In this document: positions 2,688 to 46,643 of the stretch, piece by piece | Layout: every line of letters starts with the position of its first letter | How positions within the stretch are numbered: position 1 is the stretch's first letter | Source: Phaeosaccion multiseriatum | Taxonomy: Eukaryota; Protista; Ochrophyta, other classes | DNA: 64,000 nucleotides | Direction of reading: 5' to 3' | Assembly: GCA_965112735.1 (NCBI GenBank) | Contig: OZ218963.1 | Coordinates: 1,922,001 to 1,986,000 of the forward strand | Notes under the pieces: generated by a model | Databases searched by the model: none | What the model was told of the DNA's origin: nothing | What the model saw: the letters and a program-made list of their open reading frames with translations, nothing else | Program-made: the position numbers and the translations under genes

Positions 2688-3606
2688 GGAAATGCAAAGA
2701 GCCCTCCGCCGTGAATTTGGGCCAGCTGTGAGCTTTTCGGATCACCACATCATCCCCCCGCCCCTCATTTCTCCCATCATAGATGGCACTTAAATTATAT
2801 ACAACACCTCATCAACAGTCGACAACAGGGGTATTTTTACAAGGGCCCTTGCCCTCTGTAAGGGAATGTCTCCATTTGGTGTACAAAATCCTTAAGGGAG
2901 TAAGGAAGTCAACACCCTTGGGAATTTGCTCCCGTGTGGAAAAGATGTACAACACCCTTAAGGGAAAGGGGGGCGACAGCCTTAATGGTGTTTAAAGGAG
3001 TTAAGGGTGCACAACGGCGAGGGCCAGTCCATTTGATGCGCAAGGGGCGTTGTTAGCGGGTGCGGGAGAGCACCTCCTCGTACAGGGGACCACGGAATCA
3101 CAACAAAAAAAGCAAGACGTCCATGTCGTACTCATCATCCTCCTCCAGCCATATCCTCCTCCACATCCTCCTGCTCCTCCCGCTCGTCGGCAACTCTATC
3201 CACCCGAGAGGGGGATTTGAAGCCTTCTGGCTGAGGATGTGCTCCGTGAGATATGTAGCTGCAATGACAGCCAGGGGCCTAACAAACTATCACCAGGTGG
3301 GCAGCGTCCATATTTACCCCCTGTGTGGGGGTGGGCTCAACCATGGAGCTGGTCCTGCGCCATTTCAGTTTCTTAGATGATTCCTCTTAAGTCAATAAAA
3401 TACCTATCCCCTTGTATGACCGAGAGCGTGTTCGCCTCTCCACCTTCGCCATCGAGACCCACGGCCGACTCGGCGCACAGGCGCAATCGCTCCTGCACGC
3501 CCTCGCCGAGCACGTGGTCTCCCGCACAGGCCGCACTGGCTCTTCCACCACAAAGGGCCACGTCCTCACCAGACTTCGCCGCCTCGTCAGCTGCAGCCAC
3601 CAGATG

Positions 3607-3969
3607 TCGGCCCCTGACAAGGTTCTGGGTTCCAGGTTCTGGCCGGCGCCAGCCGGCCGGGTTCCAGGTTCTGGCCGGCGCCAGCCGGCCAGGTTCCAGG
3701 TTCTGGCTGGCGTCAGCCGGCCAGGTTCCAGGTTCTGGCTGGCGTCAGCCGGCCAGGTTCCAGGTTCTGGCTGGCGTCAGCCGGCCAGGTTCCAGGTTCC
3801 CCGGAAAAAGCCGTGTAATAAGGCAATGATAAGGTCCCCTGAACCTGGTAGAACCTGGGTTCCAGGTTCTGGCCGGCGTCAGCCGGCCAGGTTCCAGGTT
3901 CTGGCTGGCGTCAGCCGGCCAGGTTCCAGGTTCTGGCCAGGGTCGCCTCAGAACCTTGTCAGGGGCCGA
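3607..3969. mobile_element. MITE, TCGRC-terminus family, with 6-bp TSD CAGATG
   Basis: 21-bp TIR TCGGCCCCTGACAAGGTTCTG / CAGAACCTTGTCAGGGGCCGA. CAGATG lies at 3601-3606 and 3970-3975. Internal tandem 32-bp units CCAGGTTCCAGGTTCTGGCTGGCGTCAGCCGG. Confidence 0.9.
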
Positions 3970-4101
3970 CAGATGTGGCTCTCGGAGCGAGAGCGCGCCT
4001 TCCTGGGTCGGCTCAACCGCGGAGCCGGTCCTGCACTCCCCCTCCCCGCCCTAGAGGGGGAGTAACCGGCCCCTCGAGGGCCTCGGCGACTCAGCGACAC
4101 C

Positions 4102-4228
<127 letters not shown>

Positions 4229-4534
4229 TCAGTTTCTTAGGTGATTCCTATTAAGTCAATAAAGTCCCTCGCCGGGCGGTTAATGACATACAACGCCCGC
4301 CTCTCCCCCAATCGATCATTGAACATCGAACAAAATCAAAACAGTGTATCGTGTCAAAGTGGGTCGTGTATCTTTCAATCCCTCTTGTGTCTGGCACTGA
4401 TTGTTTCGTCCAGCAAGAGCACAACGCAATCAGTGCATGCCACCAGCAAGTGCGCGGCGAGTTGAGGAACAGCCAAGTCCATGAGACAAGACTTCTCGTA
4501 ATGATATAACCACCACCAGAGATCCGAAAAAGCA

Positions 4535-6314
4535 ATGAACGATGAACAAGGCAAGCTGAAGCCGCCTCTACTCCTGCACCTCTTCTCTGCGCCCTTGATC
4601 CAGCGTGAAGAGGTTTTTCTGGAGGGAGGAGAGGTGGACTCGAGGGTGCTGCCTGTAGAGGAGTTGGACTACGCGGGAGAAAGGACCGCTTTGCTCGAGT
4701 AAGTAAGGATATAATGAAGTTGTCTCTCTATAGTTTGCCTGCCTGCAGCTTGACGTTTCTTCTTTCCCTCCTTCCCCCTCCTCCTTTCCCCCCCCTCTTC
4801 CCCTCTCCTCCTTTTTTTCTTCTCGTTGTTTCTCCTGCACCTTGATGTTCCTTCCATCCCCCCCCCCCCTTCACCCTCCTCCTCTGCCTCACTCACTCGT
4901 AACAAAATTGTGCACCAATAACACATCTATAGTGCCATTGCACAAGGGGGAAAGCGTGTACGTTTCCGCTCCGAGGTGGCCAAGGCCCACTCCCTGCTCG
5001 TCAGCCTGGCACAGTGCAGGATGCTCCACTTCACCGGACATGGCATGCAGGGCTACCTTGCGCTGGAGAATGACCACGGAGAAGTTCAGGTCAGGCTCAG
5101 GCTCAGGGCCACGAGGGTCGGGGCCTGCCTGTCTTTCCCACGCCACGATAAAAGACCGGCGGTGATGATACTAAATCACGTGGCTAATTCCCGTGGGCCA
5201 AGAGAGGCGCCGCACTCACCATCTCATCTGGTGTGTTTGTGATGCCCGCTCCGGTTATCCATCTGGCAGGCCGTAACAAATGACGTTCTCCAGTCGTGGG
5301 TCTCGGGCACTCACCCTCTACCCACCATCGTCTTCGTGAGCGCTTGCTACTCCGAGAGCGTTGCATCGGCCTTCATCAGCGCAGGAGTCAAGCACGTCAT
5401 TGCAATCTCGCAAAACACGAGGGTAAGGGGGGGGAATACAGTTTCTACCATGTCTCTCTCCCTTCACGCCACACTGCCTCACCTCCCTCCTCCCCCCCTT
5501 GCGCCTTTCTGGATGTGCGTGGGTCTACGCGTGGGTGTGTTTGGGTCTATGTGTGGGTGTAATTGTGACGGTCCACGTGTGGGTGCGTTTGTTTGGTCTA
5601 CGCAGGTGCTGGATTCCAAGGCGAAGGACTTCACGCAGACATTCTACACAATGGTCCTCAGGGGAAACTCCGTGGCGCAGGCCTTCAAAGCTTCCAAAGG
5701 TCAGTCGAGCAGAAGGAAGCAGAGAGCGGGGACAAACGCACACACGCACGCACACACGAAGACAGGGAAGAGAGAGAGAGAGACGGGGGAGGGGGGGACG
5801 CTTCCCGCTCCCCTGTCAGCACGACGGACCCGTTTTCGTGCCTTTGCTTTTTAACACTCGATTTGCGTAAGAATCGCCCCAATCGCCCGTTTTTTAGGGA
5901 TCGGGCGGCAAGGGGGAGTGCTCTTGCAGAAATGCTGACAACTACGGAAGGGAAGAGGCGATGAAAGCCGAAAGACCATGGATCGTTAGGCATCTCAGAG
6001 AGCTACACGAAGAGCTATAGCGCTTCTCCCAGCGTCATTTTGTGCGTGCGTCTCTCTCTCTCTCTTGCTTATCGGTTATCTCTCCTTTTCTTGTGTGTGT
6101 GAGTGTTGTACGTTTATGCGCCACGCCCTTTCTCCCGCCCTCCCCTACGTTCCTTCCTCCACCCCCCCCCTCCTTCCTTCCTTCCTTCCCTCCCTCCCTC
6201 CTCAGAGAGGGTGGGCGTAGACAGCACGCATACCCACGAGGCCGACAAGTTTCGTCTCCTCCCCGCAGAGAGTGCCCACATGGAGATGCCCTTCGCAGGT
6301 AAACGAGATACCTC

Positions 6315-6345
<31 letters not shown>

Positions 6346-7290
6346 TGTGTGTGTGTGTGCGTGTGTGTGTGCGTGTGTGTGTGCGTGTGTGTGTGTGTGC
6401 GCGCGAGCGGGCGTGCGGGTAGTGCGTTTTCGCTCCACTGCCTCCTCCTCTCCAGCCCTCCCCCAGAAGGTTCCCTTTCCATCTCCTCTGAAGACAACTC
6501 CCCCCCCCTTTCTCTTCACACGGAAGAGACGCATACACGAAGCGCTGTCATTCCCGTCTTGCCTCTCGCCTGAGTCCTCTTCCCTCCCCCCACTTCTCTC
6601 TCTCTCCCTCCCTCCAACCCCCCCCCCCCCACTTCCGTCCCTCCATCCATCCATCCATCCCCCTTCTCCTCCTCTTTGCGCAACAACATGCAGACGTGGT
6701 CACCGGCCGCTTCGAAGACGTGAGCCTGCCTAAGTCTGTGGAGATGAGCATCCCGACAGTTACGCAGAACTTTGTGGGGAGAGCAGAGACAGTGCAGCAG
6801 GTGTACTGCAATCTGGCCGACCATGTAGGCGTTACAACCGTCATCGGACAGCCCGGGGCGGGGAAGACACAGGTAGGTAGGTAGGTAGGTAGGTAGGTAG
6901 GTAGGTAGGTAGGTAGGTAGGTAGGTAGGGAGGTAGGGAGTTGGGTAGGTGGGTAGGTAGGTAGGCAGGTAGGTAGGTAGGTAGGTAGGCAGGTAGGTAG
7001 GCAGGTAGGTAGGTGGGTAGGTGGGTAGGTGGGTAGGTGGATAGGTAGGTGGGTAGGTAGGTTGGTTGGTTGGTGGGCTGGTTGGTTTGGTAGTGTGTGA
7101 GTTATATCCCCCGGTACCGTAGAGGAGGAGAGACTTTGAGACCGATAGAGGGGAGAGGGTGGAAGGAAGGAGGAAGGAAAGGGGGGGCGGGTTTAGGGTT
7201 AGAGGCAGAGGGAGAGAGAAGGCGAAGGAAGGCAACAAGACAGAGGAAGCATCATCAGTCCAAAATGAAACAGAATGACTTCATCAAAGT

Positions 7291-7332
<42 letters not shown>

Positions 7333-7795
7333 AGCGCAACACAGCGTAACTCACCGGAAAGCACCTCCATCATCAGCACCGCTCCTCCTCCGTCACAACA
7401 AACCAAAGCCTCCTCACCTTCATTGCCTGCCCCCTCCCCCTGACTGCGGAACTTTTGCGCTCCCCTTTTCCCTCCTGATGGCCACATCTCAGGTTGCGCT
7501 CCGAGCGGCTCGGTACGCGGTGGAGCGCTTCGCCCCGGCCTACGAGGAGGTGTTCTTTGTGCAGATGGGTGGCGATGGAGGTAGGAATTCGTGGAGATTG
7601 GGGGGGGGTGAGGTAAGGGAAACAGTAGGGAAAAGACAAGTGAAAGTTCCACAGTATTGTCATACCTGGAAAACGAGTTGGGAAACGACAAGTGAAAGTT
7701 CCGCAGTATTGCCATACCTCGTGTTGCCTATATACTCGCATACCTGCATGCCTCTATTTACCCCCCACAATCAATGCTTCATACCCGTATACCCC

Positions 7796-7830
<35 letters not shown>

Positions 7831-8449
7831 TTCTCTGTATGTCTGTCTCTCTCTCTATGTGTGTGTCTGCCTGTCGGTCTCTCTCTCTGTCTGTGTGTCT
7901 GTCTGTCTGCCTCTTCTCCCTTTGGGTGCGGATAAGGTGGTATTCGTGCGGCCACCGAGCAGCAGCTCTTGTCGAGCTTTGCCGCGGCCTTTGGCTTCAC
8001 CCCCCCGCAACCCAGCGACTACGCTGCTGCTGCTCCTGCGGCTGCTGCGGCTCACAGTCACAGGCGGCAGATGGAGCTGGACGATGTACTCATCGCCCAT
8101 ATCAAGGAGAGATGCGACAGCGGAGGAGGGGGGAGGGGTGCACATGAAGGCAGCAGCAACAGCAGCCGCCGCCGCAGCAGCGGCAGCAGTAGGCCGCGCG
8201 GTTCGGTAACGGCTGATGAGGGTCGCGGAGGGTATGGAGGAGCAGGGGGGCTGAAGACGCACTTGTGTGTCCTGGATGGGTGTCGGCCTTGGCTCGTCTG
8301 CGATAGGTTGAGGTAAGGGAGCGAGTGAGCAAGTGATGGGCTGTGCCGTTAGTTGAGGGGGTCTTGTTGAGGGAGGGGCTGGAATGAGGCTTGTGTCGGC
8401 CAACAATCCCATTGACGAGCCCCGGACTCCCTGACTTGAGGATTGTGTG

Positions 8450-8485
<36 letters not shown>

Positions 8486-8498
8486 TGTGCATGTGTGC

Positions 8499-8533
<35 letters not shown>

Positions 8534-9069
8534 CGAGCTTTAATTCATGCCCTCCTTGCCTCCTTTCATCATCTCGGCCTCCCTCCTTCCCTCCCTCCCT
8601 CCCTCCCTCCTACCGCCCCCCCTGCCTGCCAGAGTCATCCCATTGTCCACGTTTGTCCGCAAGCTCTCTCAGCGCGTGCCCCGACTTCAGCTCATTCTGA
8701 CCATGGTGCAACAGGTACAGTACAGTTACAATTATCAGTTACAATTATAGTTACGGTACAGTACATGGTACACTACATGTACGTACATTACATTGGTGCA
8801 TTCACGACACGCTCCTCCTCCGCAGTGCACTGCAGTTGCAGTAACAATCATCATTCATTCAGAGTCATCTCCTCGGGGAGGCTTCGTTTCGAAAGCGAAA
8901 GCTCTATCTGTCGGTTTGCGGGTGTCTCTGGTGTCAGCTCGTTGCTGTTCACACTAACTAACTCCGCTGCACATGTGCAGGGCATTTGAAAGCGCCATCC
9001 AAAATGAGGAGCCACACTTGGCTCTAACCGCTGGCCTTGCCAACGTCTTTCGATGCTGTGTGTGTGTGT

Positions 9070-9126
<57 letters not shown>

Positions 9127-9920
9127 TGTGGATGTATGTCAATGTGTGTATGTGTGTGTGCGTGGATTTGCTGCTATCTCAGGTGGGCATCGAGGGGGAG
9201 AAGGTCGTCAACGTGAGGCCTCTCGCGGCTCTGGAAGTGGCGGAGCTGTTCTGCAAAGAGGTGCGTTGAGCGGTCCCTGTAGACTCTGCATGCACACTCA
9301 TTAGCACCTTATCGTTACATCTCAAGTGTGAAGACTGTGGAGACGGGGGGGGGTGCGGCTGGGAGGGAGGGAAGGAAGGAGGGAGGATCGGAGGTAGGGA
9401 GGTAGGTAGGTAGGGAGGGAGGGAGGGAGCTGCTGCACGGCATTACCCACCTGCTGATCAACCAACAAAGTTCTGCTTGTTCCCCCTCTTCCTCGTGGTG
9501 TGTTTGCTTGCCCTGACGTGTCATCTCATGTCAACGTTTGGATGAGTAACAGGCTCCTCGTCAGTTGAGCTTCGCAGAGCTCACACTGGGAGTGTATGCC
9601 GTGTTTCAGTTACCGGAGACGGTGTTCTCACAGGGCGACATTATCAGAAAGATAGGTACTGTGCGAGGGAAGCTAAGCCGAAGGTCCGGAAGGTCGGCGG
9701 CCATGGTGGGGTCCCACTTAGCCTGGCGTTACACTGAGCCCGATCGGAAAAGAGAAGCGCGTCTCTCACTCCCTCTCACTCCGTCTGTCTCTCACGGATC
9801 CGCCGCCCTCCCGCTGGGCCTGGGTTTGGTCGTTCTCTATACCGGTTCGCTTTTCAGTAGAGCGCATCGACTTACTGCGCCTTTCCTGCCCGCCCGGCCT
9901 CTCGTCTGTCCCACATGCTC

Positions 9921-9954
<34 letters not shown>

Positions 9955-10761
9955 CTTTCTCACACACACACACACACACCTCCCCCATGTGCCTGTGCCG
10001 TTGTGACACACGTCACCATGTCACATAAGGTGGAAACCCTCGAGTATGCATTGCTGTGAGCAAGGCTGTTCCCGTGGACAATCCCGCCTTTCTGCTGGAC
10101 AGCGAGGACATGCTGCTTGACTCCTTCATTCCCGCCCAGCTCAAGGCCATCGCAGAGGAGGAGGAACTCTTTGAAACACAGCTGCAGCAGCTCGGAGACA
10201 GCAGCAACAGCCGCAGCAACGCTTCCGCGGGCATGTAAGTGGTGGTGTCTTTGCTTTCTGCTTGGCGACTGGTGACTCTCACTCGTGAAGGAATAATGTA
10301 CCGATTCCATGGGGAATGGAATGCTCCGTGGAATGTTCTGTGACTCACTCCCGAAATGGCCCCTCTCTTCCCATCCTGTCTCCCGCAACTGTGTGTGTGC
10401 GTGTGTGCGTGTGTGTGCGTGTGTGTGCGTGTGTGTGTGTGTGCAGCAGCCCTACCCCCGTCCGCTCCCCGGTCCGCAGTGTAGGTACGGGCAGCAAAGT
10501 CGACGTGCAGCTTGAAGCAGGTGCGTGTGTGCGTGTGTAGGATCTGTGTGAAGTCATTCGTTTCGTCCTTTAGTGTAGTTGGTCGTTCTGGAAACCAAAT
10601 GTATGAGTGTATGGGAAGCAGCACATGAACCTTTCTTGTCTCTCGTACTCTAATCTCTCCCTCTATCGGTGCATGGGGTCTCTCTTTTCTTTTGCTTCAC
10701 GAATCAACTCTCTTACTCTGACCTCTCTCTCTCTCTCTCTCTCTGTGTGTGTCTCTCTGTG

Positions 10762-10810
<49 letters not shown>

Positions 10811-12072
10811 TCATGTCTTGCTTCGATCGAGTCAAGGCCACATCGTGTGGATGGCGGCCGTGAAGAGCGCTACCCAAGCCGCACAGCAGAAGGGTCCCTG
10901 GGTGGAAATGGATGGAGGAGGACAAGGAGGGGGGGGGAGGGGGGCACCGCCAAGCCATTTTGGGAGGAGAGAACAGCACCAACAGCAGCAGAGCGCTGTG
11001 CACGTCAACCCAACAGCCACGGAAAACTTCCACAGTGACGTTCCGTGGGCGGCGATGGGCGATAGCGTGGCTCGGTACTGTGCCTGCGCCTTGCGGCTGG
11101 GAAAGGAGAGGCCCCTCAGTGAAGCGGATTTGGCCTTCCTGGGCTCCTGCAGGTTGGTGGGTGGGGGATAGTTAAGGGGTTGGGGGGTTGGAGGGGCGGG
11201 GGTTTGAGGAACGGTGTCAAGTCAAAGTATGGGGTGTGGTGAGCAGCTGAAAAAACGGGTCTGTTCTGGTGTGCCCACCTCACTCCTCCCCCCCCCCCCC
11301 CCCTCTCCCCCCCCCGGCCGTACGCCGCGAGTTGCTGATGAATCTTTGGTCTCACCACTGCCACCTGTGAATATTGCATGGTTGTGGAATGCTTTAGGAA
11401 GATCTGGAGGAATGGGAGCCGGGAAGGCAAGGGGAGAGCCCCCGAGGAGAGGGGGGGCATGGTGTCGTACCGAGCCTTCAGCACGTGCTTCTGGCCCTGG
11501 TTCTACGCCTGTGTGGCCATGCTTAAGCGGACAGGGCTGTGGGCAAGAGGAGAGAGGGGAAGGCATCCAACCCATTCGGCGACGGCCAATACGACGGTTA
11601 CGACGGTTTCGGAGACGAGGAATACAGCCATTGCGGGCTTCATTGGCGACTCAGAAGCGGAGAAGCGGTTACGGAATTGTGCTGGGGGCACGTTTCTCAT
11701 CCGAGTCGGAACCAGCGCCAAGAGCACGCTTGTGATCTGTTACACTCGACGTAAGAGCTCGAGGCGGCCCGGGTGCAAGAGGGCAGTCGTGCTTCTGACC
11801 GAGGAGGTGAGCAAAGGGGGGGGGGGGCTGAGGGGAGAGGTGTGGATATCAAGTTCGAGCTTGCTGTTGTTTAAACCGATCGCGATCGTTGTATCGATTT
11901 CTGAATGTTCGATCCCGTCTTGTCTCTCCCCTTTGCCATGGCACAGGGGCGGTTTCAACCCTACGCCGAGCACCACCAGGCGAGGCACCCGTCCATCCCC
12001 ACGAGCTCCAGCGGAACGCCTGGAGACAGGAGCAGCAGGAGCACCACGAGCACCTCCGGTCTTTCTTCTTCT

Positions 12073-12108
<36 letters not shown>

Positions 12109-12450
12109 CGGCGTGTGAGCTACCCTAGCCTGTCTTCGCTCATCCTCGACCGTCCGGAGCTGCTCACTCTCCACCCGGGCACTCCCAAGGCCGCAGTGTT
12201 CGGCAACGATGACTCCTCGGCTCCCATCGCTTCTTCTGCCGCTGCTGCTTATGGTGGTGGTGGTGCCTGGAGTGGTGCCCAGCAGGGAGGGTGGGTGGGC
12301 AAAGCTCTTCCGCCCAACGCCACGCCTCACGTCACACGAGGTAGAGAAGGAGGAGAAGGAGAAGGAGGGGAAAGGGGCGTTGAGGGAGGCAGAAGGAGCA
12401 GACCGAGCCAGACGCATCCTATGCCTGACTTTTACGAGCCAAACCTGTGA
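4535..12450 (+). CDS. NLR-like protein: CHAT (caspase-fold) protease + STAND/NB-ARC-like NTPase + STAT-type linker-SH2; 16 exons, about 1023 aa
   Basis: Exons 4535-4698, 4933-5089, 5270-5422, 5606-5699, 6206-6298, 6694-6872, 7493-7580, 7937-8312, 8633-8714, 9183-9260, 9553-9655, 10030-10234, 10450-10520, 10837-11152, 11398-11806 and 11947-12450 all join at GT-AG sites in one frame (3072 nt). Motifs: LHFTGHG and VFVSACYS (CHAT His/Cys dyad); [18 protein letters not shown] and GGNP (STAND); [40 protein letters not shown] (STAT linker-SH2). Confidence 0.85.
5851..6040. mobile_element. Rearranged fragment of the TTAA-flanked foldback element, inside intron 4 of the CHAT-STAND-SH2 gene
   Basis: TTAA+CACTCGATTTGCGTAAGAATCGCCCAA terminus, plus a ~120-bp block (GAAATGCTGACAACTACGGAAGGGAAGAGGCGATGAAAGCCG...) nearly identical to about 15740-15850. 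Confidence 0.8.
6873..7060. repeat. (GTAG)n/(GGTG)n tetranucleotide tract starting at a splice donor
   Basis: GTAGGTAGGTAG... begins at the first base of the intron that follows the Walker A exon. Confidence 0.9.
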
Positions 12451-12703
12451 ATCAGCCCTTTCTACTTTTGACCCTTGGCCCTTGGTTGAAAATCGATACT
12501 ATGGATAGGGATAACCGGTTTTCCTCCCACAGCAGCGAGGCCAGGTGGGTCTGACGACTATTTAGCCATTTAGAAAGAAGAAAAGAAGGAGGTATCGAGT
12601 GGCGAAGCCTATTTATAAAACCGGAGGACAGAACCGAATATGTACAAATTGACCTTAATTAAGCACTTTAATTTTGATCAGTATCACGTGGATTAAGTAA
12701 GCA

Positions 12704-14872
<2,169 letters not shown>

Positions 14873-14979
14873 GGTGCACACAATGTGGTACAGCGATGGT
14901 TGGGTGGAGGGGTGGGGGCGGGGGAGTTTTAGTTTCAGCTTATTCTTATTGTGATTGAGATGTGTTTTTTTAGTTTTTT

Positions 14980-15252
14980 TTTACGCCCCGTGAATTTTTT
15001 TTGACGCCAAATGACGATTACTTTGACGACGTTTGACGGCTTTTGAACCCCTTTTTTACCCACTTTACAGCCAAAAAAAATCACGGAAAAGGGCGTCAAA
15101 GAGCGTCAAAGGGCGTCAAAGTGCGTCAAATAGGGCTTTAAAGTGGGTAAAAAAGGGGTTCAAAAGTCGTCAAACGTCGTCAAAGTAATCCTCATTTCGC
15201 GTCAAAAAAAATTCACGGGGCGTCAAAAGTGCTACTCAACCGCAAAATCACA
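14980..15252. mobile_element. Left-truncated copy of the TA-flanked foldback MITE
   Basis: Internal inverted repeat (TTTGACGACGTTTGACG / CGTCAAACGTCGTCAAA). The right end CTCAACCGCAAAATCACAG matches 16311-16329. Confidence 0.75.
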
Positions 15253-15346: not shown

Positions 15347-15924
15347 CACCCCGTTTGCGTAAAAATCGCCCAAATTTATAGAAAAACAGTTTTCGCGCAT
15401 TTGCAGAGAAATGACGCTGGGAGGAGCGCTGTAGCTCTTCGTGTAGCTCTTTGAGATCCCCACCGATCCATGGTCTTTCGGCTTTCATCGCCTCTTCCCT
15501 TCCGTAGTTGTCAGCATTTCCGCAGCAGCACCCCCTTCCCGGCGGGGGGGGGACGGGGGATATGCACCCCACGGAAATCGCACCAGGCTTGCCAAGGGTC
15601 CTGCTGCTGCTCCACTGTGGCTAGCCGCCGTAGCGCTGCGCCTGTTCTCTTGCAGAAGGGCGGGCAAGCTGCCCATGAGCGATTTCCGTGGCGTGCACAT
15701 CCCCCTTCTCCCCCCCCCCCGGGAAGGGGGTGCTGCTGCGGAAATGCTGACAACTACGGAAGGGAAGAGGCGATGAAAGCCGAAAGACAATGTATCGGTA
15801 GGCATCTCAAAGAGCTACACGAAGAGCTATAGCGCTCCTCCCAGCGTCATTTCTCTGCAAATGCGCGAAAACTGTTTTTCGCCGGAAATCGGGCAATTTG
15901 GGCGATTTCTACGCAAACGGAGTG
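15347..15924. mobile_element. Foldback element with ~235-bp TIRs flanked by TTAA (piggyBac-like non-autonomous element)
   Basis: TTAA|CACCCCGTTTGCGTAAAAATCGCCCAAATT ... AATTTGGGCGATTTCTACGCAAACGGAGTG|TTAA. Arms 15347-15580 and 15679-15924 are near-complementary around a ~100-bp spacer. Confidence 0.85.
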
Positions 15925-15953: not shown

Positions 15954-16329
15954 CTGTGATTTCGCGGTTGAGTGGCACTTTTTACGCCCAATTACGCCCC
16001 ATTAATTTTTTTCTACGCCAAATGACGACTTTTTTGACGACGTTTGACGACGTTTGACGACGCTTTAGCCCCCTATTTGACGCCCTTTTACGCCCTTTTA
16101 CGCTCTTTGACGCCCTTTTATCTTAATTCGCCTTAATTTCGTCTAAAAATAATCACGTAAAAAAAAATCACGGAAGAGGGCGTAAAAGGGCGTAAAGGGG
16201 CGTAAAAGGGCGTCAAATAGGGGGCTAAAGCGTCGTCAAACGTCGTCAAAAAAGTCGTCATTCGGCGTAAAAAAAAAATAATGGGGCGTAATTGGGCGTA
16301 AAAAGTGCCACTCAACCGCGAAATCACAG
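15954..16329. mobile_element. Foldback MITE with TA TSD (Tc1/mariner-like)
   Basis: TA|CTGTGATTTCGCGGTTGAGTGGCACTTTTTACGCCCAATTACGCCCCATTA ... TAATGGGGCGTAATTGGGCGTAAAAAGTGCCACTCAACCGCGAAATCACAG|TA. About 50 bp is perfect, followed by a longer imperfect TIR. Confidence 0.88.
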
Positions 16330-17020: not shown

Positions 17021-20000
17021 CTACATGAAGAGCTGAGAGACGGGTGGAGTGTCGCTGTAGAGGTTGGACGCCAGCTGCGTATTCATCATCATCGACTGCA
17101 CCCCTGGCCCCTTGCTATTTCCGTGCTTGTTTCCCTCCTCCCCTTCATCCACGCCATGCTGCTGCTGCCGCTGCTGCTGCTGCTGCTGCTGCTGCCGTTT
17201 CACGGGCGTGGCGGGAAGACAGGACAACGGTGTTCGAGACAGTGTTGCGTTCACGGCCTCGCTGGTGCTGGCGCTGCTGGTCCCACCCACCCCTGGGACA
17301 GTCGCTGCGATGGGATTCAGTCTCCCTCCTGCCCAAGGAGGCGAGCGCTCGCTGGCAGAGCACGTACCGTCATTGCTTGCAATGCTGCCCTCGTACGCGT
17401 CCCCATCCGACGCCTCTGTGAGCTGCGCGGTGGTGGCAGTTGAGGTCGAGGACAAGGACGAGGACGAGGATGCAACGTGTTGCGTGCGGTGGCCATCTCT
17501 TCTTCGGACCAGCTTCTGCGCCTCACCCCCCCCCCCTGCACTAGGCCCAAACTGGTCCAGCTTCACACCCGTGCCAATCATATAGCCGGAGCTCGTGCCT
17601 GCTCCAGTCGGTGACAACCCACAATCGACGCACTGAAGCTGAGCTTGGGGTGGCGCCCCAACGACAAAGCTGCTGTTGCTACTGATGTTGCTGCAGAGGC
17701 CTCCTGGCACTTGCCCATCTCTTTCTCCTCCTCCTCCTCCTCCTCCTCCTCCTCCTCCTCCTCCTCCTCCTCCTCCTCCTCTTCTTCCTCGCCCCCCTGC
17801 CACCGCCGCTCCGGAGAATGGCGGCGTTGTGGAGTGTGTGTGTTGCTTGGCTATGGACACAGAGGTCGGAGGTAGGTGCTGGGGCTGGTGAGCGCTCTGT
17901 GTGGCCTCTCTGCAGCTTTTTACTCTCGTCCTGTGGTTTTGTTTGTTTGCGTGCGTGCGTTCGTGCGTTTGTTTAGTATGTGCAGGTTCAAATCAGAGAG
18001 CACAAGAGAGAAAGGGAAGGAAATGAGTAGCGAAAATATAGGTACTGGAGAGGAGCGAGAACACGATTCATAGAGCTTCCTTCCAGCTTCCTTTTGACTT
18101 ACTCTCGGCCAAGTTCAGAGAAATACGAGCTTCTGGGTTCGCTCCGCTCGGCTTTGGGCGGAGGACTCTTCCGACGGCGTTTGTGCTCGGAACGTTTGTT
18201 CCTCAGCTTGGCGCTAGTCTCAATCTTGATCGCAAGCCCTGCGATGAAGATGCACGCTCCTGTACGTACGTACAGAAAGAACAAGACGTACACGGGCGGC
18301 GGAAGGAATGGGGTGAGACGTAATGGGATTAGCGACAAGTAAAGTGCCAAAAACTAGAATGCTAGCTGTTCAAGGTCTTGAGTTTGAGGCGGGCTGCGCT
18401 AGTCGTCATCTATCAACCAGCCACTAGAGAGACAGAGAGAGGGCGGACAGCGAAAAGACGGCAAACGGCGGCTTTGAATCCCCGCCCGCTCGCCTCAAAC
18501 GACTGTTTTCAGGCATGAGCAACAACAACGTACCAAGCACATGCATCAGAGATACAGGCTTAGGAAAGAAGATGAAGCTGAGGCACAGTGTCAGGGCCTT
18601 TCGGGCCGTGGTGGTGATGGCGGAAACCAAGGCGCCGAACCGCTTCGTCAGCGCCGCCACAAAGCTCACTCCGATGAATCCCGCCCCTGCGAACAGCATG
18701 ACCCAGACCATCCTCCACAGCCCTGGTGTGTTGGAATTGAGGGGAGGGGGAGGTCAACAGTTTCAGTTTCACTTCAAAAAAGAGGGGGTAGATGTGAGTA
18801 GTGAGAAATCAGAAATGGTGTCTGCCTGCATGTCTACGTGTCTGCGTTGTCTACCTGTCTGCCCGCCTGTCTGTGAGCCTCAGCTGGACAGAAGGGCAGA
18901 ATGAATTTAATGCTCACTCACCAGTGCGTGAGATGAAGGCGAGTCCCTCTGCAAGCTCGCCGGTCAAGAGAGACACCACGAAGATGATGATGGTGCCTCC
19001 CATGTAGGAGTACAGGATGAGCTCGTCGGACGGGCAATCGTAAAAGTTCATGATAGACTCCTTGGTGTGGGTAGGGGAGTGTGTGCGATTGCGGAGTAGG
19101 GGTGGGTGCAAAAGGAGGAAAGCAGAGGGAAGCAGCATTTAGGGTGTAAGAGGTAAGAGTCCGTGAGATGACGCTTGTGTTATGTTAGTAGAGAGACAGA
19201 AAGAGAAGAGGAAGAGAAAGAGAGAGGGGGGGGGAGGCGGGGGGAGGGAGGGGGGGGGAGAGAGAGAGACGATAAGCAAGAAGCAGGCTATCCTCCATGA
19301 CCGCGAACGAAAGCAGCACATAGACACGTAAGACACCAAGCGAAGGGCAACTTGAACAATAAGAACCGATCCGCTTGTCTCTTAACACTGACTGACCTGT
19401 ACAGTGATGCAGGTTGCATCAATGAGGAGCGCTAAGCAAATGAGCACCACCCCACGGAAGCTGAAGGAGGGGGAGGTGGTAGCGTCGGCCCCTAAGAAGG
19501 TCACGAGCCCCACCACGATACAGCCTACCACCAAATAGTCGCGGAGTGTGTAGCGCCTCCCCTGGTACAGCACACCCATCAGCATCGTCGGCACCACTCG
19601 ACTAAGGAAGTGCATGCGTGCGAGGGTGTGTGGGGAGAGAGGCAAGAGAGAGGCAATCAGCATGGTGAGGATCAGGATGCCTCATCGACTGCGAGCAATA
19701 GAGGTACGACATGGAGAGATCACGTGGACGTGACGAGCAACAGGTAAAGGCATGGAGGGTAAATGGGTTATAATGTATACCGTGAGATCCGTCCCGCCTG
19801 GGCCCATCACTCTTTCTTTCTCTCTTTCTCTCTGCAATCCGACCCGACCAGACCCACCTACTCTTGAAGAGCACCTTGGCGGGGTAATTGAGATACTGCA
19901 TGCTGACGTTGGTGAGGCCCTGCATTAGAGCCTGCATGCACGCAATGGCCACATAGTAGCGCATGGGTATCGTGCGCTTGAGGTTTCCGCCGGCCACGCG

Positions 20001-22225
20001 GGAGGCAAATGCGTACGTGCAGTAGCCCGAGAACTGTGGCGGCGCCGTCGTGAAACGGCAAAGGTCAAGGGGCGCAAGGCACAACAGATAAGAGACACGC
20101 TACAAGCAAGGCACGCGTTAGTAAGCAGGCCGAGACTTCCGCAGAGAGAGAGAGGGAGAGAGAGAAAGAAGTGTAAGGGCGTTTTGACTGCTGATGAAGC
20201 TTCAGCTTACGGGTCAGTGGATTCGTGGGATACAACCAACCCATGCACCAGCACCGGATGGCACCGAATGGATCAATGTCAGTGTCGCGTGCCACACGCC
20301 AAACGCTGCGCCGGGGGGGCGGGGCGAAGGAGAGGTAGGTAGGTAGGCAGGTAGGTAGGCAGGTAGGCAGGTAGGTAGGTAGGTAGGTAGGTAGGTAGGT
20401 ATGTAGGTAGGGTAGTGTGAGTAGTCAAGGAGGCACCGTACCTGAAGGAGGGTCATGAAGAGGCCCAACTTCCTCTCGAACACGTGCACGACTAAGTACT
20501 CTTGCAGGTAGCCGTAGATGACGAGGAATATGAGGACCCCCGACATGCATACCAGGTACTGCTCTGTGTCCGACTTGTGTCCAATCTCCACGCCAAGAAC
20601 CTGACAATGTGGTGATTCATTAGGGGGAGAGGGGGAGGGGCAAGGGGGTTGTCAAGATACGCTGCGCCGCTGAGCAGAGCAGAGAGAGGGTGAGCAGGCA
20701 GGTATGGCATGTACGGGAGAAAATGTGCGGGGAAATGGAGGGGAACTCCATTGCTGACAAACATACACGATAAGGCGGGTATGATTGGGTGTGTTTCGAG
20801 GGTGGTTGGGGTGTGGTTGGGGTGGGCGGCCCCACCACAAGCAATACATGTACTGGTTCTTACACACATACCTTAACGCTCCGTATCTCCCTCACGTTAA
20901 AGGGCAAGCCCTGTTGTTTCCTCCCGGCGACATACCCCGTCGGTCCGTCCCCCGTATCCAACATCAGGGCACTCGTATGGGGCCAGCTGGAGTCCCCTGT
21001 ATCACCAACTGCTGCGGCTGCCGCTTCTTGGTCCGTCCGCATGCTGGGCGGTTCGGGCGATAGCAACGCTTCCGCTTGTTCAACGGCTGCGACCGAATCA
21101 TTTACAGCGAACATGGCGCTCAAGCCCGCTGACCCCCCCCCTGATTCTGCCCCTCCTGTCTCCAACTGCTCTGCTGTACTGTCTCCCGACTCCGAAGGTG
21201 GTGGGCTGGAGAAGCCATGAGGCATGTGGGTGACGTTGGCGGGTGTGCAGCAAATGTTCGTAAGGACCTCATCCACCGGAGGCAGCGGCTCCTGTGGGGA
21301 GGAAGGGAGGGGGAGAGGGGAAGACACACGCACACAGAGCACACGATAGAACTCTGTTTTACTCTTTGCTAATTTTGTGAAACAACCCCTGCGGCCGGAA
21401 GGTTCAAACACTCCCGCACACCATACCCACCCATCCCACACTCTCACTCACCACTGCCGAACGCGAACGGTCTTCTTGGGTCCGCCGTAGGGACCTGAAC
21501 AACGTGTCCACGCTCCCCATCGCCCGCTGATGTGATATGAAGGAGAACGGAAAGCAACAGACCGAATAGCGCGTGAGGATTTGAAAGAAACGCTTGGGCC
21601 GCGGGGGGGGGGGGGTAGCAGCTTGCAGCAGGTAGGGTTCGTTGTTCTTGTAATTACTCTTGTTCAAGCTGCTCAAGTAGCACCGCTTGCCCCACCCAAG
21701 GATTGGAAGTACTCGATCAAGCTTCGAGGCCGATACCCCACCCCCCCTTCCCTTCCCTCCCTCCCTTGCAATGCGCACCTGGCCTGTCCGTTGAACTACG
21801 CCAACGAGTCCATCACTTGCCCAGCCGACATGGTGGTGGTGCCCTTTGGCACCATCGCTGCCGCTTCCGTTGCTGCCGCCTTGCCTGGTATCAGCAAATT
21901 TGTGCTGTTGACGATGAGACATGCGGCCCCTGCCATCGTAGTTGTCATGGTCGTCCCTATAATCAGCGCTGCTGTAGCCCTTGCTCCTACTACTGCTGCC
22001 AACACCATCGCTATTGCTTGCACCCCCACTCCTCTTGCTGCCCCCCTGCAGCTGGACCTCGCTCGTTCCAGAAGGTGCGTCGTAGTGACGATGGTTCACA
22101 CTACCGTTGCTCAAGCTGGGGTGGCGCGGGTGGCACTCGTGCGAGCCCAATGATAGACTCTCCACCACACCATCATTCCTTTCCCGTGCTGCTGGGGAAG
22201 GTGCTGGTGATGCCTGCCTCCTCAT
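17021..22225 (-). CDS. Nucleotide-sugar/PAPS transporter (UAA family, SLC35B3/PAPST2-like) with long disordered termini; multi-exon
   Basis: FLVIYGYLQEY, GLTNVSMQYLNYPAKVLFKS, RVVPTMLMGVLYQGRRYTLRDY, GVVLICLALLIDA, LTKRFGALVSAITTTARKALTLCLSFIFFPKP. The start codon is uncertain. Confidence 0.85.
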
Positions 22226-41872: not shown

Positions 41873-44577
41873 ATGAAGCTCCTCTTCTCGGCTGCTGCGG
41901 CGGCAACTCTTCTCGTGGCTCATGAGGTGCAAGTAGTGCTCGGTTTCTCCCTCGGCGGCAGGAGCAGCAGCATTGGAGGCATCCCCAAAAGGAGCGATAG
42001 TAGCAATGGCAGGAGGGAGGGGGCGAACAACCGCAACACCGTTAGCAGCAGCAGCAGATTCCGGCCACGGAAGGGACGCCAATGTATGAGCATGAGCACG
42101 GGCGCATCATCTGAGCATGACATCCTCCTTCGAGTTGCGAAAGGGGAACAGGCAGAGAGGACTCCTGTGTGGCTCATGCGACAGGCGGGAAGGTAGGTAG
42201 GCATGGCGGGGGAGGTTTTTGCAGGTCCGCCAAGCCACTAAAGACTAGCTCAAACCCTCTTTGTGCCTCTACGCTCTCGCTTTCTCTCTGTGTGTAGGTA
42301 CATGGCCGACTTTCGAAAGTTCAGCGACAAATACCCTTTCCGACACCGCAGCGAGACGCCCGAGATTGCCGTGGAGCTGTCTTTGCAGTGCTGGAAGAAG
42401 TTCGGAATGGACGGTACGTTCCCTGGCTAAGGGACTGCGGGCTGGGTGGCTGGGGGCCTAAATTGAGGTTCATGTTGTCACCATTCCCTCCTTCCCTCCT
42501 TTGTAACAAAAGTATGCAAACGGGAGAGTGATGAAGTATAGGAGCGGTATCCTTCCTGATCCCGCTGGCCTCTGCACGTCTCTCTTCACATCGCTGCCCC
42601 CTCACTGTATGTGCACGTTAGGCGTCATCATGTTCAGCGATATCCTGACGCCTCTACCGGCCATGGGAATCGACTTCGATGTGGTGAAGGGGAAGGGGCC
42701 TGTGATTCCCAGCCCCATCAGGACGGCCAAGGACATTTCGGACGTCCGAATCATGGATGCAGGCAGCATTGACGATATGCTGCCCTTCGTCGGCAAGACT
42801 CTGCAAGAGCTCAGGAAGGAGACGGACGGAAAGTCCACCCTGCTTGGTGAGTCAAGCTCGCACCGCACGAGTCACTGTCAGTGTCATACAACAGACCCCC
42901 CCTCGCATTCGTCCCTTCTACCCTCTTCGCTCCCTTGAAATGCCCATTGAGATTATGTGCCGAGCCCCCCTCTTTGTATTCACCATCCTGTTGGATCGCT
43001 CTCGCTCTCCTGTTGCCAACACCTATCCCATCGGGATGGGTTGATCAGGCTTTGTGGGATCTCCATGGACTCTCGCAGCGTACGCCATCGAGGGCGGATC
43101 GAGCAAGCACGCGCTATACACCAAAGAGCTCATGATGTACCAGCCTGACGTCTTCAAGGTGAGGAGACGTTTTTCATGGCGTTGTATTGGCATGCATGCA
43201 GGGTCTGTCGTGGGCCTGTTTGAGAAGCGTCGTCTGTGGCCGACCTGTTTGTTGACTTCAGTACCCGTACAACAAAAGCCTGTGGGTACTACGGTATGCA
43301 GGGGAAAGAACGACATGCCAATCGTCACGCAGCTTGTTGCCTCGGCTTGCCTCCTCCATCCAAGGCAGAATATAGTTGTTGATTGTTGTTGTTGTGGGGC
43401 TTCTTCTCACATCTTCTTCGTGTGTGTATGTGTGTCTACCGGCTGACTACGGATAGGAGCTAATGGACAAGCTGGCGCTGAGCATCGGAGAGTACGCCTG
43501 CTATCAGATACGCATGGGGGCGCAGGTGATCCAGTTCTTTGAGAGCTGGGCACACCAAATGACGCCCATGCAGTTTGAGCGTTTCGCCAAGCCGTATGCA
43601 AACAAAGGTAACGGAGGGAAGAGAGAGAGAGAGAGAGATGGAGGGGGAAGGGGGAGGGGGGATATCACACTATGCGAGCCGGACTGGCAAAGTCCTCAGC
43701 CGTGTCTTGATCGTTTGGATTGTGGGGAACATCGGCAGGCGTACGCGTCCTTAAATGCTCTCCTCCTCTCTCCCTCTTCCCTCTCTCTGTATACCTTTGT
43801 CTCCGCAGCCATGGCTTACGTCAAGGCCCGATACCCAGACACGCCTGTCATCTTCTTTGCCAATGGCGGCAGCAGCTACCTCCACCTTCAAACGGACATG
43901 GCAGCTGATATGATCAGGTGTGTAGTTCGCATATGTATACACACACTTAATTGGGCCCCAATGGCCTCTGGGGATGCACGCAAATCACCCCAGTGTGCTG
44001 CTAATTTGTACGCACGGAGGGAGCACGCACGCGTCTCCGGACCGACTCCAAACACCAACCAATACCCAACGCTCCCTTTCCCCTCTTCCTTCGCCCCGCC
44101 CCGCTCCGGCCCTTCCTCACGCAGTCTCGATCAGTACGTGGACATGGCCGAGGCCCGGCATCAGCTCGGTGCGCACATTCCCGTGTCCGGAAACTTGGAC
44201 CCCCTGGTGCTCATGGGGCCCGAGGAGGGCATTCGGGAGGCTGTCAGAGAGTGCGTTGTCAAGGGCGGGGGGCAGGGCCATATCCTCAACCTCGGCCATG
44301 GAGTCATTCAGGTGAGCCCCCCCCTCCTTCACTCTTCAGTGCTTTCTTGCCTGCTTCCTTCTCCTTGCCTCTCTCCCTCCGTTGCTGCCTTCCTTTTCCT
44401 TCTCTCGTGCGTTTCATCTCACGCCCCCTCCCCTCTTCTTTTCGCGTCTTCCCGCAGCAAACACCGGAAGAGGCGGTGGGCATCTTGGTGGACGCGTGCA
44501 AAGAGCTGCGTCTAGATGGACTGCGGGGCGAAATGGCTTCACTACAAGAAGCGGGAGTCCAAGTAGATGGGAAATGA
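41873..44577 (+). CDS. hemE: Uroporphyrinogen decarboxylase, probably plastid-targeted; multi-exon
   Basis: [84 protein letters not shown]; N-terminal signal peptide (VLG-FSL). Confidence 0.95.
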
Positions 44578-44850
44578 GAAATGAGTGGGGAGAGTTTTTT
44601 TTCCTTCCTTCTCTATTTTTACTTCGACTTTTTAGAGAGTAGAGTTTATATCAGTCCAGAATATACTTGTTCTCGACACGAGGGAGAGCGCACACCGTAA
44701 TTGAACCCTCTGCTCTTTGCTCACCTACATCGCTTCAGCAAAAAAAAAAAAAAAATAAAAAAAAATCATTCGGGTTTTTCTTTCGATACGTTCGACAAAA
44801 TGTCGATACTTGGTGAATTTGGTACATGGGAAGGGAGAAGACAGAAAAAA

Positions 44851-46643
44851 ATGAGCTCCTTTCCGGCCCCAGCGGGAGCAGCAGGAGCAGCTGCTGTTGC
44901 TGCAGCTGCGGCAGGAATTTCCCCCAATGCCCGGCCGCAGGGAGTCGCAGGAGGGCCAGGGGGAGCAGTAGGAGAGGCAGCCGGGCCAGAGCAGATTGAA
45001 GATTTGTACCCCCTCGTTCTGCAGCTGACCAATCCCGAGCAAAGAGAAGGCGCCTTGCTGGAGCTAAGCAAGAGGAGGGAAGCCTTCACTGACCTCGCAC
45101 CAATACTCTGGCACAGCTTTGGTGAGTTGGAAGAAGGCTAGGTGGACGAAGCTCGCATACCCATCCCCAACCCCCACCGCCCTCCGCCGACCTCTCCCTC
45201 CTCAGGCACAGTCAGCACGCTGCTCCAGGAAATTGTGGCCATCTACCCGATGCTGTCCCCGCCAACACTCACCCCTCACGCAAGCAACCGCGTGTGTAAT
45301 GCTCTGGCGCTGCTGCAGTGTGTCGCGAGTCACCCAGAAACGAGAGGCCTCTTTTTGAACGCGCACGTGCCTCTCTACCTCTATCCTTTCCTCAACACCG
45401 TTAGCAAGAATAGGCCGTTTGAGTACCTGCGCCTGACGAGCTTGGGCGTCATTGGCGCGCTCGTCAAGATGGACGATAGGTGAGCAGTGTGAGTTGCGCC
45501 TGTAGCGGCCTTTTTGCTTCTCAAGATTGCGCTCATGGTGATTGAATGGGGTTTGCCTGAGTGCGAGTGATTGCTTGGGATGTCTTGTATCCAAGAAAGA
45601 GGAGCACCAGCTGGTGCTCCTCTTCTACGTGGTGGTTGTTCCTTGCTCTTCCCTGCCCTGCGTCTGTACATGGATCCTTACCTGCCCATGCGACTCTAGA
45701 ATGAGGATTCGCACAAGCCCTGCGTTCCCCTCCCGCTGGCTTGTCCCATGCAAAGTACCTAAATGTCATCCCCCCCTCGGCCTTCCCCCATCTCGCAGTG
45801 GTGTCATCAACTTCTTGCTGCAAACAGAAATCATACCTCTCTGCTTACGCATAATGGAAACGGGCAGCGAACTGAGCAAGACAGTGGCTACGTTTATCGT
45901 GCAAAAAATATTGCTCGACGAAATGGGCTTGAATTACATTTGTGCCACCGCAGGTGAGAACAACATCATGGTACCCTTCGCACCCTGTTAATCTTTACCC
46001 GAAACCGCCGCGCATCTCCTCTTCTCTCTTCTCAATATCTCTCTCTCTCTCCCCTCTTTCTGTAAGGGAATCTTTCGTTCATCCTCTCACCTCTCCTCCT
46101 CCTCCTCCTCCTCCTCCTCCTCCTCCTTTCTCCCACTCTTTCTCTTCTTCTGCCTGCTGTCCTCAGAGCGTTTCTACGCAGTCAGCACTGTGCTGAGCAA
46201 CATGGTGGCCGTGCTTGTCGAGTCTCCGAGTGTGCGCCTGTTAAAGCACATCGTACGCTGGTAAGTGTGTCGTTAGAAGGGTGTGTGTGCAACCTAGAGT
46301 CTGGAAGAAGTGGTTTGATCATTTCACCCGTGGGCAGTTGGGGCGGCACATTTCACCAGGAGCCGACTTGGGGCAAGCGAACTGCCCTTCCTTCTTACGA
46401 GTCCGCTTTACGCATCATGTCTGTCCTTCACCCTTCACTGCTTGCCTTCTGGCCGCTGGTCCTTCACTCTCGCGCAGCTACCTGCGGTTGTCTGACAACC
46501 TGCGGGCACGGGAGGCCCTGAAGCAGTGTCTACCCGAAGCCTTGAGGGACCACACCTTTGCGACCGTGCTCAAGGATGACATTGCCGTGAAGCGGTGGTT
46601 CTCGCAGCTGCTCATCAATATTACACCAGAGAACTCCGCTTAG
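44851..46643 (+). CDS. CNOT9: CCR4-NOT subunit 9 (Rcd1/Caf40); multi-exon
   Basis: [100 protein letters not shown]. Confidence 0.97.

Follow-up and report, generated by a model that had tools for sequence, protein, structure and literature searches.

This study revealed a gene of the ochrophyte alga Phaeosaccion multiseriatum that combines, in one predicted protein, a caspase-like protease with a linker-SH2 module of the type found in STAT transcription factors. The gene occupies approximately positions 4583-12450 of the + strand, in about 15 exons, of the window, by which we mean the whole stretch of 64,000 nucleotides that was analysed (contig OZ218963.1 of assembly GCA_965112735.1, positions 1,922,001 to 1,986,000); the segment 10837-12450 contains its last three GT-AG exons, which are referred to here as exons A, B and C. 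As read from the sequence, the layout of the encoded protein is tripartite, comprising a CHAT effector, a STAND NTPase switch and a C-terminal linker-SH2. The SH2 domain is of the STAT linker-SH2 type, which was confirmed at the level of sequence profiles, and this STAT-type module on an algal CHAT-STAND protein is real and, as it appears, undescribed. The evidence inclines us slightly towards an intact NLR-like gene, in which the linker-SH2 would sense a phosphorylated ligand or act as a recruiter, and would thereby control the oligomerisation of the STAND domain and the activation of the protease. The tail of the protein, which ends in FYEPNL, is most likely a fast-evolving, disordered and lineage-specific extension, and not a conserved STAT-like phosphosite.

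Exon B was compared with 1.84e9 representative proteins in an exhaustive HMMER search, which returned five proteins at E<1e-3. These are P0002 from Tribonema minus (KAG5181688.1, 968 residues, "CHAT domain-containing protein"; E=2e-5), P0005 from Chrysoparadoxa australica (CAM9141129.1, 660 residues, unnamed protein), and three open reading frame (ORF) fragments, of which P0004 and P0001 stem from unannotated assemblies (on L001 and L002, respectively) and P0003 from a JGI metagenome contig (L003). Relatives of the L001/L002 type carry the assembly accessions GCA_024449855.1, GCA_024449685.1 and PJEL01. A word-index search gave no match for exon B, and the linker-SH2 region of P0005 matched P0005 alone; one metagenome scan was empty, and another yielded only L004, which equals L002 in the compared region. 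The family is very small in public data. The homologues are publicly labelled "CHAT domain-containing", "hypothetical" or "unnamed", a bareness of annotation that is due to Pfam missing the SH2 domain. A linker-SH2 profile was built from the C-terminal modules of all six members, to which the window and the unannotated loci contributed exon by exon, and a second profile was built from the five relatives with the window left out.

When the window-free profile was compared with the PDB, STAT6 (3.3e-13), STAT3 (2.5e-10) and STAT5A (5e-10) were followed by STAT5B, and weaker matches were obtained with STAT1 (4e-8), STAT2 (4e-6) and Dictyostelium STATa (4e-3). With the window included, the E values were 4.7e-15 for STAT6 and 8.8e-6 for Dictyostelium STATa, and 21 distinct STAT sequences stood at the top of the ranking (E 5e-15 to 1e-5). 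The best non-STAT SH2 domain in the PDB, that of p85, reached an E value of 0.007-0.011 with the two profiles. The alignments extend over residues 326-509 of STAT6 and 369-556 of STAT5A, that is, from the start of the linker to the end of the SH2 domain, and this extent is retained without the window. The STAT linker-SH2 type had been proposed in an earlier sequence-only reading of the same DNA, and this assignment is borne out: with either profile, 21 STAT chains outrank all other SH2 domains in the PDB with linker and SH2 aligned together, and the family profile covers animal and Dictyostelium STATs from the linker start to LYP..PK..AF.

The motifs common to the family and to STATs comprise vpW..l...f..vG..R.L..e.l.FL, FWxWF, LW, GF(i)s..ae.lL, GTFLxR.S and LYP..PK..aF; at the last of these, which closes the SH2 domain, the window aligns with LYPKKPKDEAF of STAT6, and P0005 has LYPDTPKAQAFG. 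Once spliced, exons A to C form an open reading frame that includes KIW, VSYRAF, GTFLIR and YPSLSSLI, and in which the SH2 domain ends in AAVFG. All the motifs that had been quoted for 10837-12450 on the + strand were found in this spliced reading, together with the TAC codon of the last tyrosine. The spliced C-terminus of the window scored 117 bits (E=4e-38) against the window-free profile. A shuffle control was carried out on a reading of the window whose exon B/C junction was mis-spliced; this reading reached 103 bits, compared with 7.8 bits for the best of its 2000 shuffles. The relationship is visible by the family profile only, as phmmer searches with the single sequences of exons B and C retrieved no STAT from the PDB, and the Pfam SH2 model scored 17.4 bits on exon B alone, below its cut-off of 21 bits. 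The betaB5 arginine of the phosphotyrosine (pTyr) pocket, which lies in GTFLLR in STATs, is present in the window (GTFLIR), P0002, P0005 and L003. The hallmark of STAT-type SH2 domains is an alphaB' helix that replaces the betaE and betaF strands (PMC6895964).

With regard to the upstream exons, the protease is, by homology, a caspase-like peptidase of the CHAT type, separated from the SH2 domain by a STAND P-loop NTPase. In tblastn searches with P0002 and P0005, collinear and stop-free segments on the + strand were found, the first at the CHAT His motif and the last at the end of the SH2 domain, and the ORFs of L001 and L002 follow the same order. Pfam recognised CHAT (PF12770; 51.1 bits, cut-off 24) and nSTAND1 (45.3 bits, cut-off 27.1) on P0002, and on the exon fragments of the window the scores stayed below these cut-offs (CHAT 12.1 and 17.9 bits, nSTAND1 15.2 bits). 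The key residues are all intact in the window, namely the CHAT His/Cys dyad (HFTGHG and SACYSES, collinear with P0002), Walker A (GQPGAGKTQ), Walker B and the SH2 arginine. No repeat family that could provide a repeat-type C-terminal sensor (TPR, WD40, LRR) was found by Pfam in the window exons or in the homologues. The sensor of STAND proteins is usually their C-terminal domain; with CHAT and STAND domains upstream, the protein is therefore NLR-like, and its linker-SH2 would take the sensor position. A protease in the same gene and the lack of a STAT DNA-binding domain had both been claimed before. The former agrees with the collinear tblastn segments and with the Pfam matches on P0002, and the latter with the upstream exons and full-length homologues, which carry CHAT and STAND instead. 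The earlier account of the protease was nevertheless incomplete, since the STAND NTPase between protease and SH2 had been overlooked.

Under the favoured reading, the SH2 domain would bind in trans to a ligand that carries a phosphate, most probably on the tyrosine of a peptide modified by a dual-specificity or TKL kinase, and ligand binding would relieve autoinhibition or recruit the protein itself. The STAND domain would then oligomerise in an NTP-dependent manner, and the CHAT protease could be activated through induced proximity, by analogy with caspase-9 on the apoptosome. A broader proposal is that ochrophytes possess a pTyr-gated NLR-like switch for cell death or immunity, made up of a linker-SH2 sensor, a STAND NTPase and a fused caspase-like protease; this is a tentative idea, and we regard it as somewhat doubtful. 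If true, the STAT linker-SH2 would be a free-standing signalling cassette that existed before, or independently of, STAT transcription factors, and its coupling to regulated proteolysis would have arisen within the SAR lineage.

Four rival explanations were weighed, which invoke, in descending order of our confidence, a targeting module, dimerisation through the tail tyrosine, a phospho-independent domain and an artefactual tail. According to the first, the SH2 domain docks the protease on phosphorylated substrates or scaffolds, and activation is brought about by the NTPase and another input. This explanation draws on the same architecture and the same pocket evidence as the sensor model, from which this analysis does not separate it, and SH2 domains are commonly recruiters. 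The usual role of the C-terminal domain in STAND proteins speaks against it, however, and we consider it unlikely.

Several observations weigh against the sensor reading. The ligand of the SH2 domain, the kinase and the phosphosite are all putative, and stramenopiles are not known to possess classical tyrosine kinases. The gene model is a prediction from homology and GT-AG logic only, and the boundaries of its N-terminal exon segment are approximate, being set by homology (tblastn). As only six members are known, arguments from conservation are thin. The AlphaFold models of P0005 (residues 470-660) and P0002 (residues 724-905), for which the six-member alignment was used, had a predicted local distance difference test score of approximately 47 and were not used as evidence; Foldseek, run on one poor AlphaFold model, returned SH2 domains as all of its top matches, none of which was significant (E of at least 0.05). 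Finally, a lysine replaces the betaB5 arginine in L001 and L002, so that phospho-binding may not be family-wide.

This lysine also speaks for the view that the linker-SH2 is a phospho-independent interaction or structural domain, comparable to the ancestral type, whose ligands are of another kind, to Dictyostelium STATb, whose SH2 domain is aberrant, and possibly to plant STATL. The sub-threshold Pfam SH2 scores in the window, P0004 and P0001 are consistent with such a role. STATb works without the arginine (PMC3135261), and the pTyr dependence of plant STATL is given as unproven (PMC8331091). In contrast, the arginine is kept in the other four members, in L003 even within the STAT-like RLSES, and the probability that we assign to a phospho-independent domain is low.

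The sequence following the SH2 domain was read as an 81-residue C-terminus rich in Gly, Ala and Pro, in agreement with the Gly-rich tail ending in FYEPNL and a stop that had been described previously. Its designation as a STAT-like tyrosine tail, on the other hand, did not withstand comparison, as no relative found shares the tail tyrosine. Four of the five have no tyrosine after the SH2 domain, with tails of 12 residues in L001, 9 in L002 (and L004), 27-29 in L003 and approximately 60 in P0002. The fifth, P0005, continues after PK..AF with GPGYPNLSLGWGA and then a stop, which was confirmed on the genome, and its tyrosine (AFGPGYPNL) aligns with the SH2-closing AFGKYY or AFRSHY of STATs, not with their phosphosite. 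The tails of the relatives, which range from 9 to 62 residues, are unalignable. Two tyrosines among 81 tail residues correspond approximately to the background frequency, and the terminal one is not beyond chance. It lies 77 residues past the end of the SH2 domain, whereas the tail tyrosine of STATs lies about 20 residues from it. A literature search did not turn up the residues that surround the phosphosite of Dictyostelium STATa, and the YEP context given for it in the earlier reading is unconfirmed. Taken as a family feature, a STAT-like tyrosine tail is not supported, and the predicted proteins of the relatives speak against it.

In the model put forward in the sequence-only reading, the tyrosine of FYEPNL is phosphorylated and a reciprocal pTyr-SH2 dimer activates the protease, as in STATs. 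The module is truly of the STAT type with its betaB5 arginine present, the long flexible tail has this tyrosine five residues from its C-terminal end, and the drop in GC at the stop suggests that the tail is part of the exon. These points are countered by the absence of a corresponding tyrosine from the relatives, by tail lengths that vary from 9 to 81 residues and by an intron-like GC content at third codon positions (GC3); moreover, oligomerisation would already be supplied by the STAND NTPase. We therefore judge the dimerisation model to be distinctly improbable.

The GC3 of the tail is 0.49, compared with 0.52-0.57 for introns and 0.61-0.82 for homology-supported exons, which indicates weak or no coding constraint. 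After AAVFG, neither an in-frame stop nor a credible donor/acceptor pair was found, and GC falls from about 0.62 to about 0.45 exactly at the TGA, so that the tail is probably translated. The intron-like GC3 would also fit an annotation artefact affecting the tail or part of the model, in the form of an unseen intron, an alternative last exon or an unexpressed locus, as would a second open frame over 12119-12505 and the derivation of the gene model from homology and GT-AG logic only. The position of the GC fall, the lack of a stop or convincing splice pair and the stop-free, collinear homologous segments argue against such an artefact, which we hold to be very unlikely. A hidden intron joining FYEPNL to AAVFG, by comparison with AFGPGYPNL of P0005, was considered and rejected, since there is no phase-matched donor/acceptor pair and no pyrimidine tract. 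The features of the gene are listed in Table 1.

Table 1. Predicted segments of the CHAT-STAND-linker-SH2 gene in the window, in the order of the gene
Feature	Position	Strand	Evidence and boundaries
N-terminal exon segment with acidic motif VEELDYAGE, before the protease	4583..4702	+	tblastn, N-terminal ORFs of L001/L002; boundaries approximate
CHAT exon, catalytic His motif LHFTGHG	4934..5089	+	tblastn with P0002/L001/L002, E down to 8e-13; weak Pfam CHAT match
CHAT exon, catalytic Cys motif (SACYSES)	5279..5425	+	64% identity to P0005 over 36 residues
CHAT domain, C-terminal part	5597..5698	+	tblastn; Pfam CHAT match of 17.9 bits on ORF 5243-5851 falls here
Conserved segment KFRLLPAE, protease-NTPase interval	6211..6300	+	tblastn
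STAND NTPase exon, Walker A GQPGAGKTQ	6690..6872	+	tblastn; weak Pfam nSTAND1 and AAA_16 matches
NTPase exon segment past the P-loop	7487..7576	+	weak collinear tblastn
Walker B segment	8251..8313	+	tblastn with P0002, P0005, L001, L002
NTPase segment	8643..8702	+	weak collinear tblastn
STAND helical segment	9183..9266	+	tblastn
STAND helical/winged-helix segment	9556..9693	+	weak collinear tblastn to P0005 318-363
Exon A: low-complexity stretch, then start of STAT-type linker	10837..11152	+	acceptor AG 10835-6 after (CT)n; donor GT 11153-4; intron phase 2
Exon B	11398..11806	+	donor GT 11807-8
Exon C, first part: low-complexity insert of ~54 residues, then C-terminal half of SH2 (12109-12204)	11947..12204	+	acceptor AG 11945-6
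Gly/Ala/Pro-rich tail, 81 residues, ending in FYEPNL; Tyr codons 12250-12252 and 12433-12435; TGA 12448-12450	12205..12450	+	spliced reading

With regard to gene structure, L003 has an intron at the same place as the intron that follows exon A in the window. Exon B contains a 28-residue in-frame insert (11546-11629), at whose position P0002 has an insert of 12 residues and L003 an intron (9860-10088, between GLWAR and AGF). The possibility that this insert is a retained intron was rejected, as no canonical sites of workable length were found and its GC3 is approximately 0.62. In L001 and L002, which are AT-richer, the CHAT-STAND-SH2 gene is nearly intron-free. The acidic motif VEELDYAGE, which precedes the CHAT domain, has its counterparts in VEEIDYKGE (L001, ~1300-1350), VEELDYKGE (L002, ~8000-8050), VDKLQYEIE (P0002) and, with a phenylalanine, VDELDFAKV (L003). 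This motif with its aromatic residue contains the only conserved tyrosine of the family in an acidic context, and it is probably structural.

The DNA of the window is eukaryotic and not human, and no part of it is similar to a toxin or a virus. It has a GC content of 56%, GT-AG introns, many microsatellites and coding polyQ and polyAla runs. Microsatellites crowd the introns of the CHAT-STAND-SH2 gene (6871-7090, 6300-6420, 8424-8540, 9045-9180, 10370-10440 and 10690-10810): an (AGGT)n run begins right at the donor that follows Walker A, runs of (GT)n and (GCGT)n occur several times further on, and the acceptor of exon A has a (CT)n run as its polypyrimidine tract. The presumed promoter or 5' region, which separates the CHAT gene from a divergent DEAD-box helicase gene, comprises eight tandem copies of a 32-nucleotide repeat and an extended (CA)n run, at 3595-3976 and 4097-4230. 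A dispersed repeat occurs in an intron of the gene (5914-6040) and again 9.8 kb downstream (15726-15852) with 93% identity, and a second repeat pair with GCGTCAAAG-like units lies nearby (14981-15223 and 15992-16289). These dispersed repeat pairs may be transposon remnants.

The genes surrounding the CHAT-STAND-SH2 gene comprise the DEAD-box helicase (2-2741, - strand), a Dcp1-like decapping gene (13031-14980, - strand; PF06058, 5e-15) whose polyQ/(CAG)n run is very long (~13563-13991), a UAA-family nucleotide-sugar transporter (19605-20651, - strand), a plastid-type uroporphyrinogen decarboxylase (42507-44512, + strand) and Rcd1/CNOT9 (44701-46640, + strand). The best match of the uroporphyrinogen decarboxylase is found in Chrysoparadoxa australica, followed by the brown algae Choristocarpus, Ectocarpus and Scytosiphon, with 62-68% identity in the best exon, which places the window among ochrophytes close to the PX clade. 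In both L001 (4463-7120, - strand) and L002 (11136-13799, - strand), a HOOK-domain gene follows the CHAT-STAND-SH2 gene tail-to-tail.

The known carriers of STAT-type linker-SH2 modules are the STATs of animals and Dictyostelium and plant STATL, and the module has been put forward as the form ancestral to SH2 domains. Stramenopiles are not known to have a toolkit of pTyr readers beyond Spt6, and in our literature searches neither a CHAT-STAND-SH2 architecture nor a STAT-type SH2 domain of stramenopiles or brown algae was found to be described. The family described here widens the known distribution of the linker-SH2 to stramenopile algae, in a non-transcriptional context, and suggests that phospho-signalling is connected in this group with regulated proteolysis or cell death, with a bearing on the evolution both of SH2/STAT signalling and of regulated cell-death machinery.

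Compared with STATs (human STAT6, STAT5, STAT3, STAT1 and STAT2, and Dictyostelium STATa), the algal protein has the same contiguous linker and SH2 domain. It carries CHAT and STAND domains in place of the N-domain, the coiled coil and the Ig-like DNA-binding domain; its tail tyrosine is not conserved, and in the window the module is interrupted by low-complexity inserts of 28 and approximately 54 residues. Because it has neither the coiled-coil and DNA-binding domains nor a conserved tail tyrosine, the protein is not a STAT. We know of no CHAT-STAND fusion described for plant STATL. Plant STATL, also referred to as SHA-SHB, possesses a STAT-type linker-SH2 with no canonical STAT function, as summarised from Gao et al. 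2004 in PMC8331091 and PMC3670131. By this description, the algal and plant proteins agree in several respects: both carry a STAT-type linker-SH2, both belong to photosynthetic eukaryotes that are neither animals nor Amoebozoa, and neither has a conserved site of tyrosine phosphorylation.

In bacterial and fungal CHAT-STAND proteins of the nSTAND1 type, which are compared here together with protease-bearing NLR-like proteins, an N-terminal CHAT domain is likewise followed by a STAND domain with Walker A and B. The algal protein belongs with these CHAT-STAND proteins and differs in having a linker-SH2 in place of the usual TPR, WD40 or LRR sensor repeats, and PADLOC and NCBIfam gave no significant defence-family match for it. 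A more distant analogy may be drawn with the Apaf-1/caspase-9 apoptosome and with NLR/caspase-1 inflammasomes, of which the algal protein is not a member: in each case, a ligand-gated STAND oligomer would activate a caspase fold by proximity. In contrast to these assemblies, the algal protease is fused in cis, and its presumed sensor is a phospho-reader.

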